DNA from: Vitrella brassicaformis CCMP3155
Taxonomy: Eukaryota > Protista > Chromerida
NCBI GenBank assembly: GCA_001179505.1
Contig: CDMY01000305.1
Location: 456,233-520,232 of the forward strand
Length of the DNA: 64,000 nt
Direction of reading: 5' to 3'
Positions 26,265-63,524 of the stretch are shown in pieces. The notes under the pieces are model-generated. The model ran no database searches, was not told the origin of the DNA, and saw only the letters and a list, made by a program, of their open reading frames with translations. Positions within the stretch are counted from its first letter, which is position 1. Every line of letters starts with the position of its first letter. Made by a program: the position numbers and the translations under genes.

Positions 26265-29200
26265 ATGTTCGCCAAGGTGAAGGACGGCCAAGCCACAGGT
26301 GAGAGCACCGAGGTCGTCCAGCAACAGATGATGCATCCATCTGATGTCCATCCCACCCATCCGTTTGTTTGTCTGTTTGCTTGTCATTTGTTGCTGCAGG
26401 TGGTTTTTCGTTGCTCTCGTCGTCATCTGGTGCGTCGTCGTCTGGCGGCGGGCTGTTCGGCAGCAAACCGTCCTCGCTCTTCGGAAACACAAACAACAGC
26501 AGCAGCAAGGCAAACACAGGTCTGCCATGACATGAGAAGCAATGGTCACCACCACACCATCACCGCACTCTTCTCTTCGTTGGTTCATTGGTTGTGTCAG
26601 ATTCGTCATGTGGCGGCTCAGTTCTCTCTTCTTCGGCCTTCGCAAGAACACCAAAAGAGGTACACACACAGCACCATTGATTACCATCCTCATGTCATCC
26701 AGTTGCATCAATGCATGTGGTGCTGCTCGTTCACAGGGCGATACCTCAGGCGGTAACACAGAACAAGAGAGACCTACCTGAGACACAACATGCCTCTGGT
26801 TCATTCATTCATTTGTCGGTGTGCGCGTGTGCGTGTTCAGGATTCTTCGCAGCTGGAAGCGGCGGCTCACTCTTCGCAGCCCTCCGCGCCCAGCATCAGC
26901 AGCAGCAAGGCCCTTCAGACTCATCATCAGACGCAAATGGTGACCACACCACCAAAGCCTCACATCGCGGCAGTGGTGGTGGTGGAGGGCTGTTCGCGGC
27001 GGCGTTCGGAGGGGGGTTCGGCAACTCGAAGCTGTTCAGCGGGGGAGGAGGAGGGGGAGGCGGGATGGTGGGTGAGAGTAAGCAGGCGCTCTTCGGCGGC
27101 CAGCGGCAGACGAACACCGGCGACAGCTGTGACAAGGACGACAAGTCGACGTCCGACCAGACCGTGCAGCAGAAGCAGCAGAGCGCGGACGGCCTCTCTG
27201 CTCAGAGTGGAGGATCAGGCACGTGGACAGGACAAAACTAGCCCCACACTCATGCACCACCTCCCCTTCTCTCTGTGTGTGCCTTCTTGTCAGGTTTGGC
27301 GTTTCTGTCGAGGCCGCCGGCTGCAGTGGACGACGCAACAGACAAACACAATGACGACACACAGAAGAGGTAAATCAAGGCGACATCATACACATTTGTG
27401 GAAGTATCCATCTGTCTCCCCTGTTTTCATTTTCAGTATGTTTGCGATGCACGAGGGCGAGTCGGCTGCCGCACACGCCATGACCGACCCCCGCCAAAAC
27501 CAACATGAGAGACACGATAATGGTAGAATGGAGGCAGAGAGAAAGGCGCCTCGAAGGGTGTTGTGTACCATTTCTGCTGTTTGTGTGTCGCACAGATGCC
27601 ATAGGTGGTTCTGCTGGCGGCGAAGGTGCGGTGGCTGCGACGGACATGACGACGGATGAGGGCACCAACCAGGAGGACGAAAATAAGGACAAGTCTACGA
27701 CAGGTCAGCGCACACACACCGAGACACAACACACACACACTCGCCTTGAAACATTGCCTTTGTTCATTGCGCTTCAGACGGTATGGATGTGTGTGCGTTG
27801 TCGCCGGCCAAGCGTCCGCTGGGGGATGAGCACCAGCAGGAGAGCGGCGAGCCGCAGATCAAGCGGCCCAAACCACCACCCCGCCCCTCCCCATCCATCA
27901 GAGCTGCTGCTGCTGCTGCTGCCGTACACAAGCCGACACCCCACCACCATCTGACCACCGAGGCGACCGGAGCGAGTCATGTGATCGCCCGTCCCAAGGT
28001 GCCGCGGAGCTCACCCATCAGACCGCCCAAGACCATACGTCAGCCACCAATGACACCGAAGGAGGAGCCCAGGGATGTGAGTGCATTGTGTGTGTGTGTG
28101 TGTGTGTCAGTGTCGGGTGCGCCTGTGATTAATCAGCCCAAGAGGATGCCTAACAAGTTGGGTGCAGCCCCACCCCGACCCAAACACGCACCTGTCGCTA
28201 AGACGTAATAACGACACCGCCACATGACATGCATGGCACCCGCATGCACCCTCTCGTGTTTATATGTGCAGTCCCATTGTGCCTCGTCCGACGTCTCTGC
28301 TGCTGCCGTCGTCTAACCCTCGCGCGCCATTCCCCCCTCTCCCCGCCCATACCCTCAAGAAGCCCAACACACTGCTCAACGGCGGCAAGGCGCCGCCAGC
28401 CATCAATCGCAGCGGCCAGCAGCAGAGGGGCGGGGGTGGCGCGGCCACACCACAGACACCCGACACGCCAGACAAGGCCGTGAGCAGGGTGGGCACGGGT
28501 CTGACGATCGGCCGCAATCGCAACGTGTCGTCGGCGTCGCCACTCCCCGCTCCACCGCCCTCACCCAGCCACAACGCAAAGGCAGACACACAAGACAACA
28601 CACAAAGGGTGACCTCCATGTGTGTGTGTGTGTGTGTGTGCAGCGTAAGGGGCATCCGCATGCATCTGTCGGCTCTGGCGCGGCTGTCCTGTCAGCGCTG
28701 CAGAAGGCCATCACTGGCGGGCAGGATGCACACAGTGGTACGAGGGAGACACACAAAGACCACAGACCAGAGACACGTTCGCTCGTGTGTCTGGCTCAGT
28801 TGAGGTGAAGGCAGCGAGTGTGGCGGCGAGCGAGCGGTCGTCGGTGCAGGGGAGTCCGCAGCCCGACACACTCTCACACGCCATCGAGAGCTTCACAAAC
28901 ATGCAGAAACAGGTGGGTGACTGACATGCTTTCACAGGAGTGCGTACACATCTTACATCAGCTCAATGCAATGTGTGTGTGCTAGTTGAGTGTGGTGCCT
29001 ACGAGTGATCGCATCAGCCAGATGGAGCAGCGGGACCAAATACTGCAGAAGACATTCCAGCAATCCACCAACAGGTAAGTAAAGTCACACAGAAGAGCAA
29101 TCAAGTTAGTTGATCAGGATGCACCCAATTGTGTGTATTGCAGGGAGAACGAGACGATGTGTCAGCTGGGCAAAATCGAAAAGGACATGGCACAACTGCA

Positions 29201-39836: not shown

Positions 39837-42800
39837 TCACAGTACGTCATGCACATCACCGGTCCTCTTTGTCCGTCTCGACGATGCCGCCCCTTTGCCC
39901 TTTCCTTTGCCTTTGCCCTTGCCTTTGCCTTTGCCTTTGCCTTTGCCCTTGTCCTTGCCCTTGTTTGTGCTCCTCTTGCTGCTGCTGGCCTTGTCTGTGC
40001 TGTTCTCGTCATGGGTCACAATCACCTCTACACCCTCGTTGTCAACCACCTCGTCCTCAACGTCACTGTCTGTGTCTGACTGTGTGGCCGACGGGGGGAT
40101 CAAGTCGTCCTGCTCGGCCTCCGGCACCACCGACACGCTCTGCACCTCATCTCCATCAGGCAGGCGCTGCACCAACACACCCGTCGCCGTCCGGCCCTGG
40201 TGGCAAACACACACACCATCGGGAAGCTCTGTGTTGTTGGTCGTTCTGGTGTGCCCATCTGAGTCACCTGCAGTGAGATCTCTCCGGCCTTCTGTCTGAG
40301 CACGGTGCCGCCGGCGGTTGAGAGCATGATCTCGTCGTTCAGGCGGCACACCCGCATACACGACACAGCGTCGCCGCCTAGCTTCTTCTTCTCGGCCGAT
40401 GACGCCTTGTTGCCGCTGGTGTTGCCGCCATTGCCCTTTCCCTGAGGCTTGAACTTGGTGGCGATCACACCGAGGCCTCCGCGAGACTGCAGACGGAAGT
40501 GCGACGGCTTGATGCGCTTGCCTGACACACATGGACACGACACACAGATATAGGGAGAGAGTGTGGTGTGAACGGGCTGGAGTGGGTGGGGCTGGACTGT
40601 GTACCACAGCCGTTTTCGGTGACGGCGAGAAGGAAGAATTTGTTGGCGCCCTTGCCGTCGTCGTCCTCGTTGCCCGGCAGGATGTCAAGGTCGGCCACCT
40701 GGTCACCATCCCTACACACACGCATGCACACACAAGCCAGCCATTCATTGTGAGGATGGTCATGTCCTGCATTCAAACACGCACCCCTGCCCTGCAAAGA
40801 CCTGATTTTGAGCGATTTGACCCCTCTGGATGTGCGCGAGGTCGGTCGAAGCTGCTCGCCATCGGTGCGGAAGCGGATCGCATAACCGCCACGAGTTGCT
40901 GCCAGCAGCACACACACAGCACGACATACACAAGTAGAATGGGCACCCATTGCCCCACTGCATGTGTGCGCACCAATGATGACGGAGTCGTCGTCAGTGC
41001 ACCGCCGCACGAAGCGCAGTACGTCATCTGGCTCGAGGGCGATGAGTGTGAGCCCCCTGTTGGAGACGTTGGCGAAGGCCGCCAGAGGGGTCTTCTTGAT
41101 CCAGCCCTTCTTGGTCAGCAACACCAGGTACTCATCCTCCTGACATGTGCATGTGACCAACACACACACACACACGCGACAAGCCATCCGTCCATCCCTC
41201 TCTCTATCTCTCTCTGTGGGTGTGTCTGTGTCTGTGTGGGGGGGGGGGGGGGGNNNNNNNNNNNNNNNNNNNNNNNNNNNNNNNNNNNNNNNNNNNNNNN
41301 NNNNNNNNNNNNNNNNNNNNNNNNNNNNNNNNNNNNNNNNNNNNNNNNNNNNNNNNNNNNNNNNNNNNNNNNNNNNNNNNNNNNNNNNNNNNNNNNNNNN
41401 NNNNNNNNNNNNNNNNNNNNNNNNNNNNNNNNNNNNNNNNNNNNNNNNNNNNNNNNNNNNNNNNNNNNNNNNNNNNNNNNNNNNNNNNNNNNNNNNNNNN
41501 NNNNNNNNNNNNNNNNNNNNNNNNNNNNNNNNNNNNNNNNNNNNNNNNNNNNNGGGGGGGGGGGGGGGGGGGCACCTTACCTTGAACTGTGTGATGGGCA
41601 GGACAGATGTGATCCGGTCGTCCGCTGCGATGGGCAGCACCTGAGGCAGCGGGACCCCACGTGCTGTCCGTGAAGACAGAGGCACCTACACACACACATC
41701 ACATCCCCCACCCATCCGACCACACGTGCCTTCCCTCCACACACACGTATACACACACGTGCACTGCACCTGGTAGGCCTTCACGGTGAAAGCCACCCCC
41801 CTGTTGGAGACGAAGAGCAGCGTGTCGTGGTCGTTGCACGCGAAGAAGTGGGCGACGCTGTCGTCGTCGGATATCTTGGCGCCGAGCTTGCCGCGGGTGC
41901 CTCTCGATTGGGGGTCGAACTCCTCAACGGGCAGGCGCTTCACGTAGCCAGAATGCGTCACGATCAACACCGACCTGTCGTTGGGGATGAGGTCCTCTTC
42001 GGTGAGGTCGGCGGCCTCGTGTATGATCTCCGACCGCCGCTGGCCGCCGTATTTCCTTTTGAGCTCCTTGAGCTCGGTCTCCATGAGGTGGTACACCTTG
42101 CTGTCCTCGCGCATCAACGCCTCCAACTCGGATATGCGCGCACGCAACTCCTGTGCACGTCCACACAACACAGACACAGACACACAGAGAGAGAGAGAGA
42201 GTGGGTGTGTGGGATTGGCTGGCTGGCTGGCTGGCTGGGTGCGATTGCGTACCTCAAGCTCTGTCTTGAGCTTTTCCTCCTCGAGCGCAGTGAGCCGGGC
42301 GAGGGTGAGTCGCAGCAGCGCCTCAGCCTGCTCCTCACTCAGGTCAAACGGGGAGCCTGACACACACACACAGACACACGTATGAGTTTATGTCCATGGC
42401 TGTTTTGTCCATGTTGGCTCTCTCCACTCACCCTGGAGGGCTTCTCTGGCCTGGTTGGCGTCCTTTGCCTGCCTGACGACATCGATGACGTCGTCGATCT
42501 GCGCCAGGGCCTTGAGCAGCCCCTCAACCACATGCGCCCGCTGCTTCCGCCGACCAAGCTCGAAGTTCGTCCGCCGACGGATCGTTCGGAATCGGAAATC
42601 AAGCCAGATCTGCAGAGCAGACCTGATCAAAGCAAAACACCCACAACCACAGAATGCGCGAATTGTTCGATGGTGTGTATCTGTGAANNNNNNNNNNNNN
42701 NNNNNNNNNNNNNNNNNNNNNNNNNNNNNNNNNNNNNNNNNNNNNNNNNNNNNNNNNNNNNNNNNNNNNNNNNNNNNNNNNNNNNNNNNNNNNNNNNNNN

Positions 42801-60324: not shown

Positions 60325-60624
60325 NNNNNNNNNNNNNNNNNNNNNNNNNNNNNNNNNNNNNNNNNNNNNNNNNNNNNNNNNNNNNNNNNNNNNNNNNNNN
60401 NNNNNNNNNNNNNNNNNNNNNNNNNNNNNNNNNNNNNNNNNNNNNNNNNNNNNNNNNNNNNNNNNNNNNNNNNNNNNNNNNNNNNNNNNNNNNNNNNNNN
60501 NNNNNNNNNNNNNNNNNNNNNNNNNNNNNNNNNNNNNNNNNNNNNNNNNNNNNNNNNNNNNNNNNNNNNNNNNNNNNNNNNNNNNNNNNNNNNNNNNNNN
60601 NNNNNNNNNNNNNNNNNNNNNNNN
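60325..60624. other. Assembly gap (300 N)
   Basis: N run downstream of the HEN1 stop codon. Confidence 0.99.
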
Positions 60625-60727: not shown

Positions 60728-62487
60728 TCACCACGCTTCTTCGTCGTCTTCCCAATCCATCGCCACCACCGCCCTACCCTGCTGCTCCTGCTGCTGCTGG
60801 TGGTGGTCCTGATGCTCGACGTCGTCTCCCCAGCCGCCCCAGCCGCCCCATCCACCGCTCTCCTGCTCCTGCTTTCCGTCCTCCTCCCCATCGATGGCCA
60901 TGGCCTGGTCGATGGTGTCGTCGTCCATCTCGTCTTCTGGTTCGGTGTCAGAGTGGATGGATGGGGGCGGGGTGAAGGAGACCGTCACCAGTGACGGCTG
61001 AGAGGGGTCGGCGAAGGAGAAGTGGTGGTCGTCAGAGAGGACCTGGAGCAGCGTCTGCTGGTCGTTCAGACACAGACGACGGAGCTGCACACACACACAC
61101 ACACACTCACACAAGGCGCCACAGACAGGCATCCATCGATCCATTTACACGCCCATCCATTAATGTATCTGATCTGCGTGTCTGCCCACACACTAACTCA
61201 CTCACTGACCTCTTTGGCGCTCTCAGTGTCTTCCTGCCACACGTCGGTGAGGTCGAGGGTCTGGTCGGGGATGGCCTCGGCCTCGACCTCGAGCTCCTCA
61301 TCGGTGGGCCGGCCATAGGGTTCCATCGGGGGCCTGACACACACCGGACACCACCTAGCCACAGAGCCACCGACAGGTGGTGTCCGTATGCTCGTGGGTC
61401 TGGTGTTGTGTGTGCCCATGTGTGTGGGGGGTGGGGGAGGGTGGGGCTTACTGTGCAAAGCGCTGGACGAGACCGACAATCCGAGACTGACAAACAAAGA
61501 CACAGACAGACAGACAGACAGTGATAGATGCTCGCTATGTAGGTCTCACTCCTTTGTCTCTCTCTCTGTCTGTCTGTCTGACCGTCGCTGGATCGCTCAC
61601 CGTTCGGTCGTATCCCTCGTCCCTCACACTGGGCCACCAGAAGCCGTCGAAGTCCTTCCACCCCGCCACTTCCCCGCCCCCGCCCCCGCCCCCTGCACCA
61701 ATGGCTGCACCGCCATCATCCTTCCTCCGAAACACAGCACACTGAGTGCAGCACCCATACGCCTGGGACATGGCCCACGCGGCGGCATCCGGCGCACACT
61801 CGGTCGTGTACGGCACACCCAGCACACTGCTCGTAGCTGCGGCCGTGGCTTTGCCTGAGGCGTCGATGTAGCTGTCGGGCGGCAGCAGCCTGACGATGCC
61901 GAATGGCTTGCCGTGTCGCGAGTGGCTGAGCGTGGTAGGGTTGGTGTAGATGAAGGTGGGCGTGTTGGTGTTGGTGTGTGACGGAGAGGGAGAGGGAGAG
62001 GGAGAGGGAGGGGGAGGGGGAGGCAGGAGAGAGGGCGGCGTTGGGTGGGCCGGTGTCGGCGAGCCGACGCCGACGAAGAAGACGTCATAGTTGGGGTAGC
62101 TCTTGCAGACGGACAGGCACCACTCCTATCGCCAGACAGACAGACAGACACACAGACACAGACCAGCGTTGGCATTTTTGCGTTGGCGCGGGTTCGTGCG
62201 CTTGGTCACCTGGAACTCCTGGCGCGTCCACTCGAACTTGTGATCAGAGTGGCGAACGAAACTGCACACGTGGACACACACAGCCAAATGCACCATTTGT
62301 CCTTTCCCCAGCGTGTGTGTGTGTGTGAGAGTGGGCACGTTGGTTTGTCGGAGAAGAGGGGGTTGAAGTCTTTGTTTGGCGTGGTGACGAGGCACATGGC
62401 TGGGCAAAGGTCGCCAAAGATGCTCTTGCTGAGGGCCGGCAGGTCAGCAGGCTGCAAATGCTCAATCCTGGCGAGTAGCGTCACACA

Positions 62488-62522
<35 letters not shown>

Positions 62523-63524
62523 GGAGAGAGGGACTGTGTGCATCAATTGTCCATGTGTGTGTGTGTAATTCGGGGGCGGTGCGTACACTTCGATGAGCGT
62601 CACTGCGTCGGGCCAGCCCTTGTACTCAAGCGGCACACGCAGAATGTCCCCTACATCCACACACACACACAGCGCGACACGAGCATCCACTCGAGCACCC
62701 ACACGTCCACCCAGCAGCCCTCTGTGTCGTCTCAGTCTCACCTTTGAGCAGCTTCAGCCTGAGCGGAAAGTCCCGCCGCCACGCCACACACAGGTGCCGA
62801 CCGAACGGGGCCACACACCACTGGCAGACACGCACGCACGCACACCCCACAATGCAATGCAGCCAGCGATGTCCAAATCACATCCACGCCTCCTTCTCTG
62901 CATGTGCGCGGCGTCTATGCCATGCTCACTCACTCCCTCCCTCCCTCCCTAACTCACCCTGTCGCTGTCGAAGAGGGCATTCTCGTCGGTATCGACGCCA
63001 ACCTGACACAAACCACCACATACCACACCACACCACGGCATACAAGGCGCATCGCATGCACTCGTGGATCTGATCTGGTCTGGTCTGGTCGGTTGGTCTC
63101 ACCACTAGTACACTATCGGTGTCGAGGGCGTTGTTCAGGCCGATACGGCCCAGCAGCTTCCCCTCGCCACAGCCCAGATCAACAACCTGACATCAATGAC
63201 AACCACACCACACCACACTGCGATCCCCTCAATCCCACCTCCCCCGCCACGCACCTTGTGAGCTCCACACGCTTCCAGAAGGTCGATAGCCAGCCGCATT
63301 CGCTGCAGCCATACCGGGCTGCTGAATTTCACCCCTCCTTTGCCGCCCTTGGACGGGCTCCCGCTCCCCTCCTCGAGAGTCAGCTCGCTGATGCTCTTGT
63401 CGATGCCGTCGATGAGCAGCGCGCCGGCCTTGTCAGCGGCATCGCTGCCGCGTGCAGGAGGTCCGCCTGGGTGGAGAGGGTCAGACTTACGACTGGGACC
63501 GGGAGCCGTCGTAGCGACGTCCAT
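60728..63524 (-). CDS. HEN1: Small RNA 2'-O-methyltransferase HEN1 (short HENMT1-like form) with acidic GW-repeat C-terminus
   Basis: VKFSSPVWLQRMRLAIDLL, VVDLGCGEGKLL (SAM motif I), VGVDTD, TLIE|...IEHL, IFGDLCP...LVTTPNKDFNPLF, RHSDHKFEWTRQEFQ|EW (~62254-62209), YGCCTQCAVFRR; TGA 60728. Confidence 0.93.

Follow-up and report, generated by a model that had tools for sequence, protein, structure and literature searches.

HEN1 is the 2'-O-methyltransferase that acts on the 3' termini of small RNAs, and it must find these RNAs after they have been loaded onto Argonaute or Piwi proteins. In animals, the C-terminal region of Hen1 (about 100 residues, with no defined or bioinformatically predicted functional motif) appears to mediate the interaction with PIWI and the anchoring to nuage, and is dispensable for catalysis in vitro (PMC6158503); a dimer of fly Hen1 with Piwi has also been predicted in an AlphaFold2 screen (PMC12014135). 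In the alveolate Tetrahymena, Hen1p methylates the RNAs bound by the Piwi-clade protein Twi1p, which itself is bound by Wag1p and CnjBp, two proteins that carry GW repeats, showing that such repeats can be read by an alveolate Piwi-clade Argonaute (PMC5666084). The cofactor Gtsf1 has a disordered tail whose tryptophans help to bind PIWI and, in Bombyx, an extended Tudor (eTudor) scaffold, with W99 of Bombyx Gtsf1L binding the eTudor domain of Vreteno more strictly than Ago3 (PMC10711660). Here we analyse a 64,000-nucleotide stretch of the genome of Vitrella brassicaformis CCMP3155 (contig CDMY01000305.1, forward-strand positions 456,233 to 520,232; hereafter the window), whose minus strand carries an 11-exon gene for a short-form HEN1 (60731-63524, with the start ATG at 63524 and the stop codon at 60728-60730). 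Its last exon encodes an acidic tail with five tryptophans, and the best single explanation that we can offer, tentatively, is that this tail would dock HEN1 onto a Piwi-type Argonaute complex.

Compared with the animal short HEN1s (HENMT1, DmHen1, Pimet and zebrafish Hen1), the Vitrella protein shares the N-terminal F-x-P-P-x-x-x-Q-R motif, the HEN1 methyltransferase domain with its metal ligands in E-x-x-E-H and D-H-K-F-E-W, and likewise a C-terminal module, L-x-x-L-C-...-L-R-x-x-L, with a variable tail behind it. It differs by an insert of about 95 residues in the methyltransferase domain, an N-terminal extension of about 60 residues, and a G-flanked tryptophan triplet in place of the single acidic tryptophan of invertebrate and fish tails. 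With the WG/GW platforms (GW182/TNRC6, NRPE1, SPT5L, Tas3 and Wag1p/CnjBp), it shares G-flanked tryptophans in a disordered segment where G, D, S, E and Q abound, L, I, M, Y and C are missing, and tryptophans are kept while the flanks diverge. The platforms, however, typically carry many more tryptophans than the three clustered ones of Vitrella (five in the whole tail), which stand three residues apart; they are scaffolds, whereas the Vitrella motif, a candidate hook, sits on an enzyme. The Gtsf1/Asterix tail is alike in belonging to a small-RNA-pathway cofactor whose disordered C-terminal aromatics, tryptophan included, contact PIWI and/or eTudor (PMC10711660), although this is another family (CHHC zinc fingers) with single aromatics and not a GW array.

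A short-form HEN1 with a tryptophan-bearing tail

The spliced gene model, tail included, equals the public protein P0004 residue for residue (587 residues; UniRef name 'Small RNA 2'-O-methyltransferase'). It was built from GT..AG joints in contigs, the distances between the pieces of a contig, and a full enumeration of GT-AG sites and open frames; the joints occur in contigs of the cDNA-like runs X1, X2 and X6 and are absent from the DNA run X3. Because Pfam gave nothing useful on separate exons, which are too short as pieces, and only generic methyltransferase families below the cut-off on the whole protein, the identity of the enzyme was settled through matches in the PDB. In a phmmer search, the methyltransferase domain of P0004 has human HENMT1 (4xcx) as its top match (E = 2.5e-34), with further matches to bacterial Hen1 (about 1e-24) and Arabidopsis HEN1 (9e-15). 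Foldseek likewise ranks 4xcx first for an AlphaFold2 model of the protein (TM-score 0.83 by target), and human, bacterial and plant HEN1 all stand within the top 13 ranks; the methyltransferase core of this model has a predicted local distance difference test (pLDDT) score of 80-95. In alignments with animal and fungal HEN1s, D93, G95 and C96 of the S-adenosylmethionine (SAM) motif D-x-G-C-G are invariant columns, as are the metal ligands E180, E183, H184 and H231 (E-x-x-E-H and the H of D-H-K-F-E-W) and also D230. P0004 lacks double-stranded RNA-binding domains and is of the short form. By similarity, fold, invariant residues and identity to P0004, the gene is a genuine and already annotated HEN1, as the first-pass annotation of this DNA had read it, and the activity predicted for its product is 2'-O-methylation of small-RNA 3' ends.

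Beyond a small folded C-terminal domain, about residues 507-587 (60731..60973, minus strand) form the tail, which had been described beforehand as very acidic and disordered. Both properties are borne out by the predictions and the composition: pLDDT falls below 50 over residues 508-587, and 26 D/E stand against 2 K/R, for a net charge of -24. The tail holds 5 tryptophans in 81 residues. W548, W551 and W554 are clustered in GGWGGWGGWG (residues 546-555 of P0004, 60827..60856), and W580 and the C-terminal W587 belong to the closing MDWEDDEEAW (residues 578-587, 60731..60760); both strings, reported in the same first reading, are read directly in the minus strand. The tryptophan excess is modest when set against the protein's own W-rich body (binomial P = 0.042) and clearer against a 1.3% background (P = 0.004); against the same background, the tail of a paralog described below reaches P = 0.0007. 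Residues 540-562 are made up solely of G, W, D, E, Q, S, K, V and H; L, I, M, Y and C do not occur there. WG/GW platforms favour N, S, A and D besides W and G and disfavour L, I, M, Y and C (PMC2910046), so that the likening of this cluster to Argonaute hooks holds when the two are compared by residue content. Tryptophan triplets as such abound in the junk frames of this GC-rich window, whose six-frame translation has 83, and GGWGGWGGWG is the only one of them in a G/D/E/S/Q context within a coding frame. Other GW-like strings in the six-frame translation lie at 27902 (minus strand, frame 2; SSSSSSDGWGGAGWWFG) and at 40572 (plus strand, frame 2).

A second HEN1 gene in the same genome (protein P0001, 71% protein identity; locus L001, 3001-5673, GCA_001179505.1, CDMY01000878.1) offers a close comparison. 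The two loci align along both their exons and their introns with a DNA identity of 73-81%, which makes the duplication fairly recent. The paralog shares the junction ESAKE|LRRLCLND, with an intron at the equal place (103 nt, L001 5214-5316), and its last exon is open and equal in length despite several indels, with the same end EEAW. Since DNA identity is much the same in the last intron (82.5%) and in the tail exon (81.8%), raw identity is uninformative and only codon-level tests are informative here. The tail exons are about 18% diverged in DNA and the tails about 55% identical in protein; all three clustered tryptophans and the terminal one are kept, as are the flanks DGKQE..SGGW and GWGDD and the final EEAW, a conservation of tryptophans against diverging flanks that rests on this single pairwise comparison. 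At the cluster the paralog reads ESGGWRPGAWRPPWGDWNGWGDD, with WGGWGGWGDD aligned to WGDWNGWGDD, and it adds two tryptophans at the same site through a different repeat (WRPGAWRPP).

Tryptophans also recur in the tails of more distant HEN1s. At least one follows the C-terminal module in 17 of 21 eukaryotic short HEN1s retrieved by the searches. Their neighbours are usually acidic or small, and they often stand no more than a few residues from the C-terminus, as in the ends ..EESWDE, ..EESWD, ..ENWEASD, ..DDWTDSDV and ..KSWDDAG; no tail tryptophan is present in the mammalian sequences and the one mucoromycete sequence sampled. Across 14 representatives of non-Vitrella lineages, tryptophan makes up 3.2% of the tails vs 1.2% of the bodies, about threefold more (37 observed against 14.2 expected, Poisson P = 3.4e-7), and 22 of these 37 have small or acidic neighbours on both sides. 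Most of these tails carry acidic D/E-W-D/E motifs, not GW. In the chytrid Powellomyces hirtus (P0032), the last ~90 residues are proline/serine-rich and contain five WG/GW motifs (LGW, SWG, LWG, SWGG and GWG), an independent example of HEN1 with a GW-type tail.

Proposed docking to a Piwi-type Argonaute complex

We infer a mechanism, both for the binding partner and for the recruitment, in which exposed tryptophans with small or acidic neighbours would serve as short linear motifs. They would keep HEN1 at a Piwi-type Argonaute complex by contact with Argonaute or with a scaffold attached to Argonaute, and the 3' end of the loaded single-stranded guide could then be methylated. The first-pass annotation had not known such a mechanism to be described for HEN1, which stands for the motif and needs narrowing for the recruitment. 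Literature searches for HEN1 together with Argonaute hooks, GW repeats, GW/WG motifs or tryptophan brought up no account of a motif of this kind in the enzyme, and an interaction with PIWI through the C-terminal region is already reported for animals (PMC6158503). What would be new is the GW or tryptophan motif as the means. A literature search on Argonaute or Piwi of Vitrella or other chromerids returned nothing relevant.

Two observations are added here to the earlier idea, namely that HEN1 tails are enriched in tryptophan across phyla and that the last intron is retained, as described below. Because tryptophan-bearing tails recur in invertebrate, fish and fungal HEN1s, the hypothesis may extend to model organisms. 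We envision a wider form of it, which we hold to be unlikely, in which tryptophan docking would be a widespread and unrecognised feature of short-HEN1 tails, running from the acidic C-terminal tryptophan motifs of many animals to the GW clusters of Vitrella and the chytrid. It would thereby supply the missing Piwi/Argonaute-binding motif, and intron retention in Vitrella would switch between a tethered and an untethered enzyme. The conserved, exposed tryptophans provide a concrete hypothesis that can be tested by point mutations, in an alveolate small-RNA pathway that has gone unstudied.

Coding status of the last exon and rival explanations

By evolutionary criteria, the last exon (60731..61084) is coding. 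The GC content at codon positions 1, 2 and 3 is 0.74, 0.37 and 0.81, with a third-position composition like that of the confirmed exons. Its first 37 codons (60974..61084; LRRLCLNDQQTLLQVL...VTVSF) encode the second half of the folded C-terminal domain and have a ratio of nonsynonymous to synonymous substitution rates (dN/dS) of 0.17 against the same-genome paralog. They align to the module L-x-x-L-C-x(5)-L-R-x-x-L of animal and fungal short HEN1s, in which C474 and L485 are nearly invariant, and the score that they obtain with a hidden Markov model of this module, built without Vitrella sequences, was reached by 7 of 20000 shuffles. In the AlphaFold2 model, residues 450-507 form a small folded domain (pLDDT 72-89), and a predicted helix at 465-473 spans the junction of exons 10 and 11, so that a product of the intron-retained mRNA would split a folded domain. 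From these features and the frame kept open in the paralog we conclude that the spliced product has been under selection, and hence that the tailed protein is made or once was.

The transcript data point the other way. The last intron (61085..61209) is retained, colinear with the genome, in record 1 of X1 and record 18 of X6, both being contigs from which upstream introns have been spliced out, and record 6 of X2 is colinear with the genome up to 61191, inside the same intron. Over 60965-61077 the bin depths are fully accounted for by the retaining contig, which leaves little room for a spliced one. No spliced 61210|61084 junction was seen in the contigs, in a joint listing that masked 61080-61145 as a repeat, acceptor included, so that a spliced joint at this acceptor would be dropped; nor can contigs show the absence of a rarer spliced form. 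A search for database fragments across the spliced exon 10/11 junction returned only the window's own open reading frame (ORF). With the intron retained, translation meets a stop after three codons and the protein ends ...ESAKEVSE; the paralog intron has an identical early stop because it starts with the same GTCAGTGAGTGA. The retained-intron mRNA is the main assembled form in the available data, and it would encode an enzyme that breaks off halfway through the C-terminal domain and has no tail. Since the last intron is mostly retained in the cDNA assemblies, the tailed form may be a minor or conditionally produced isoform. Retention may also be regulated, a possible regulatory layer that would yield the enzyme with or without its docking tail. 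Absence of this exon from mature mRNA had been named in advance as one of the findings that would refute the docking idea, and the outcome is divided, with the intron retained in contigs of three runs and the exon coding by the evolutionary tests. It could be argued from the retention that the tail is simply not made, the GW frame being a relic of a formerly longer gene within the 3' untranslated region (3'UTR). This we consider decidedly unlikely in view of the strong in-frame codon periodicity, the constraint on the first 37 codons, the frame kept open in two paralogs, the homology to the module of other HEN1s, and the confidently predicted helix that truncation would disrupt, together with the limits of masked contigs just given.

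If the tail is made, its tryptophans may still be functionless, or may serve another partner. Several observations weigh against docking on Argonaute and most of them would fit low-complexity drift, in which a slippage-prone 9-nt or 15-nt repeat within an otherwise unconstrained acidic linker would encode GGW or WRPG by accident. Behind the three GGW units lies a perfect tandem repeat of 9 nt in 2.6 copies (60828..60850; CCCCAGCCG on the plus strand), from which it follows that the W548/W551/W554 cluster arose by replication slippage and that at least part of the array is very young. Over the disordered tail, dN/dS against the paralog is 0.80, near neutral and indicating weak constraint overall; W580 is replaced in the paralog, and the WRPGAWRPP repeat at the equal site is a different one. 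W-rich strings are frequent in alternative frames of this GC-rich genome, and the authors of the WG/GW scoring caution that stretches biased towards W or G produce false positives (PMC2910046). The clustered tryptophans are only three residues apart; W580 and W587 sit 26-39 residues downstream of them. Tryptophans at a spacing of three residues are probably too close to fill two Argonaute tryptophan pockets simultaneously, and Piwi-clade proteins may not keep these pockets. Finally, the cross-lineage enrichment (P = 3.4e-7) comes from HEN1s found by full-length queries and profiles, a route that may somewhat favour query-like tails. Against drift, tryptophans are kept or expanded at one spot in both paralogs, with the three clustered and the terminal one surviving at ~55% tail identity, and they are over-represented in HEN1 tails across many unrelated lineages; disordered regions are as a rule depleted of tryptophan. 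Weighing both sides, we regard drift as somewhat unlikely. An alternative that we deem unlikely is that the tail docks or partitions through a partner other than Argonaute, such as an eTudor scaffold, readers of tryptophan motifs of the CCR4-NOT type, a W-acidic transport adaptor, or an RNA granule. It would suit the acidic D/E-W-D/E motifs that most HEN1 tails carry in place of GW, the anchoring of animal Hen1 to nuage through its C-terminal region (PMC6158503), and the preference of Gtsf1L W99 for Vreteno eTudor over Ago3 in Bombyx (PMC10711660). These partners are, however, only candidates in Vitrella, and the G-flanked cluster is closer in composition to Ago hooks than to W-acidic motifs. 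Docking on a Piwi-type Argonaute complex thus stays our tentative choice for the Vitrella tail.

Gene structure and minor observations

All exons lie on the minus strand. The coding part of exon 1 (63255..63524) begins at the ATG at 63524, and exon 2 (63103..63186; VVDLGCGEGKLL) carries the SAM-binding motif. Exons 3 (62958..63002), 4 (62742..62820) and 5 (62587..62650) were placed by contig joints and open-frame search. Exon 6 (62339..62467; IEHLQPADL...) holds E183 and H184, and exon 7 (62210..62261; FVRHSDHKFEWTRQEFQ) holds the metal-binding H231. Exon 8 (61601..62125, 175 codons) comprises the end of the methyltransferase domain together with the Vitrella-specific insert. This insert (61700-62060, residues about 262-360 of P0004) lies inside the domain, flanked by the VGVG strand and the GCCTQ motif, contains a low-complexity stretch rich in P and S, is predicted to be disordered, and is absent from all other aligned HEN1s. 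Exon 9 is a 35-nt mini-exon (61452..61486) located by record spacing in X6 contig 18 and by splice sites, and exon 10 (61210..61333) follows from joints in X6 and X1 contigs and from open frames. Two alternative acceptors of exon 10 are both in frame, 61333 in X6 contigs and the annotated protein and 61354 in X1 contigs, the latter adding seven residues (WCPVCVR). The last intron (GTCAGT...GTGCAG, phase 0, 125 nt) leads to the last exon, which is entered after the canonical acceptor ..GTGTGCAG|CTCCGT; the stop codon of the long isoform, as read in the sequence, is TGA (60728..60730).

The frame of the ORF at 60728-61144 reads as the first-pass annotation described it (...EQESGGWGGWGGWGDDVEH... 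and ...GKQEQESGGWGGWGGWGDDVEHQ...), ending in MDWEDDEEAW and a stop. Its ATG at 61144, by contrast, is intronic, and the exon starts at 61084. A separate small gene starting from this ATG (138-residue ORF, P0241) was considered and rejected, as a (GT)n tract supplies the first 20 residues and as both the predicted helix at 465-473 and the conserved module run across the exon 10/11 junction.

A 300-N assembly gap (60325-60624) lies some 100 nt past the stop codon, because of which the 3'UTR, the polyadenylation site and the transcript 3' end are not readable. In X2, the tail contig ends at 61191, 18 nt inside the last intron, no contig covers exons 9-10, and the depth is 32 over the tail vs 7-12 over upstream exons; the end at 61191 could be an internal transcript start, an assembly-graph break or a filter effect. 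Odd non-intron joints at 60976/63199 and 60798/62308 (GG..TG and GG..CC) occur in contigs of the DNA run X3, one of them also in X6, and are probably repeat-induced or from chimeric contigs.

As for close relatives, no relative of the tail exon was found among JGI metagenome contigs, and a HMMER search with exon 8 returned only the paralog, one spurious low-complexity match and one environmental fragment of 94% identity, and thus no HEN1 of Chromera, dinoflagellates or Perkinsus for comparison. This fragment is carried by a 2488-nt metagenome contig (ENA ERZ893784), which ends before the tail exon and on which the gene caller's product (P0002) reads through an intron; a close relative of Vitrella is therefore present in the sample.

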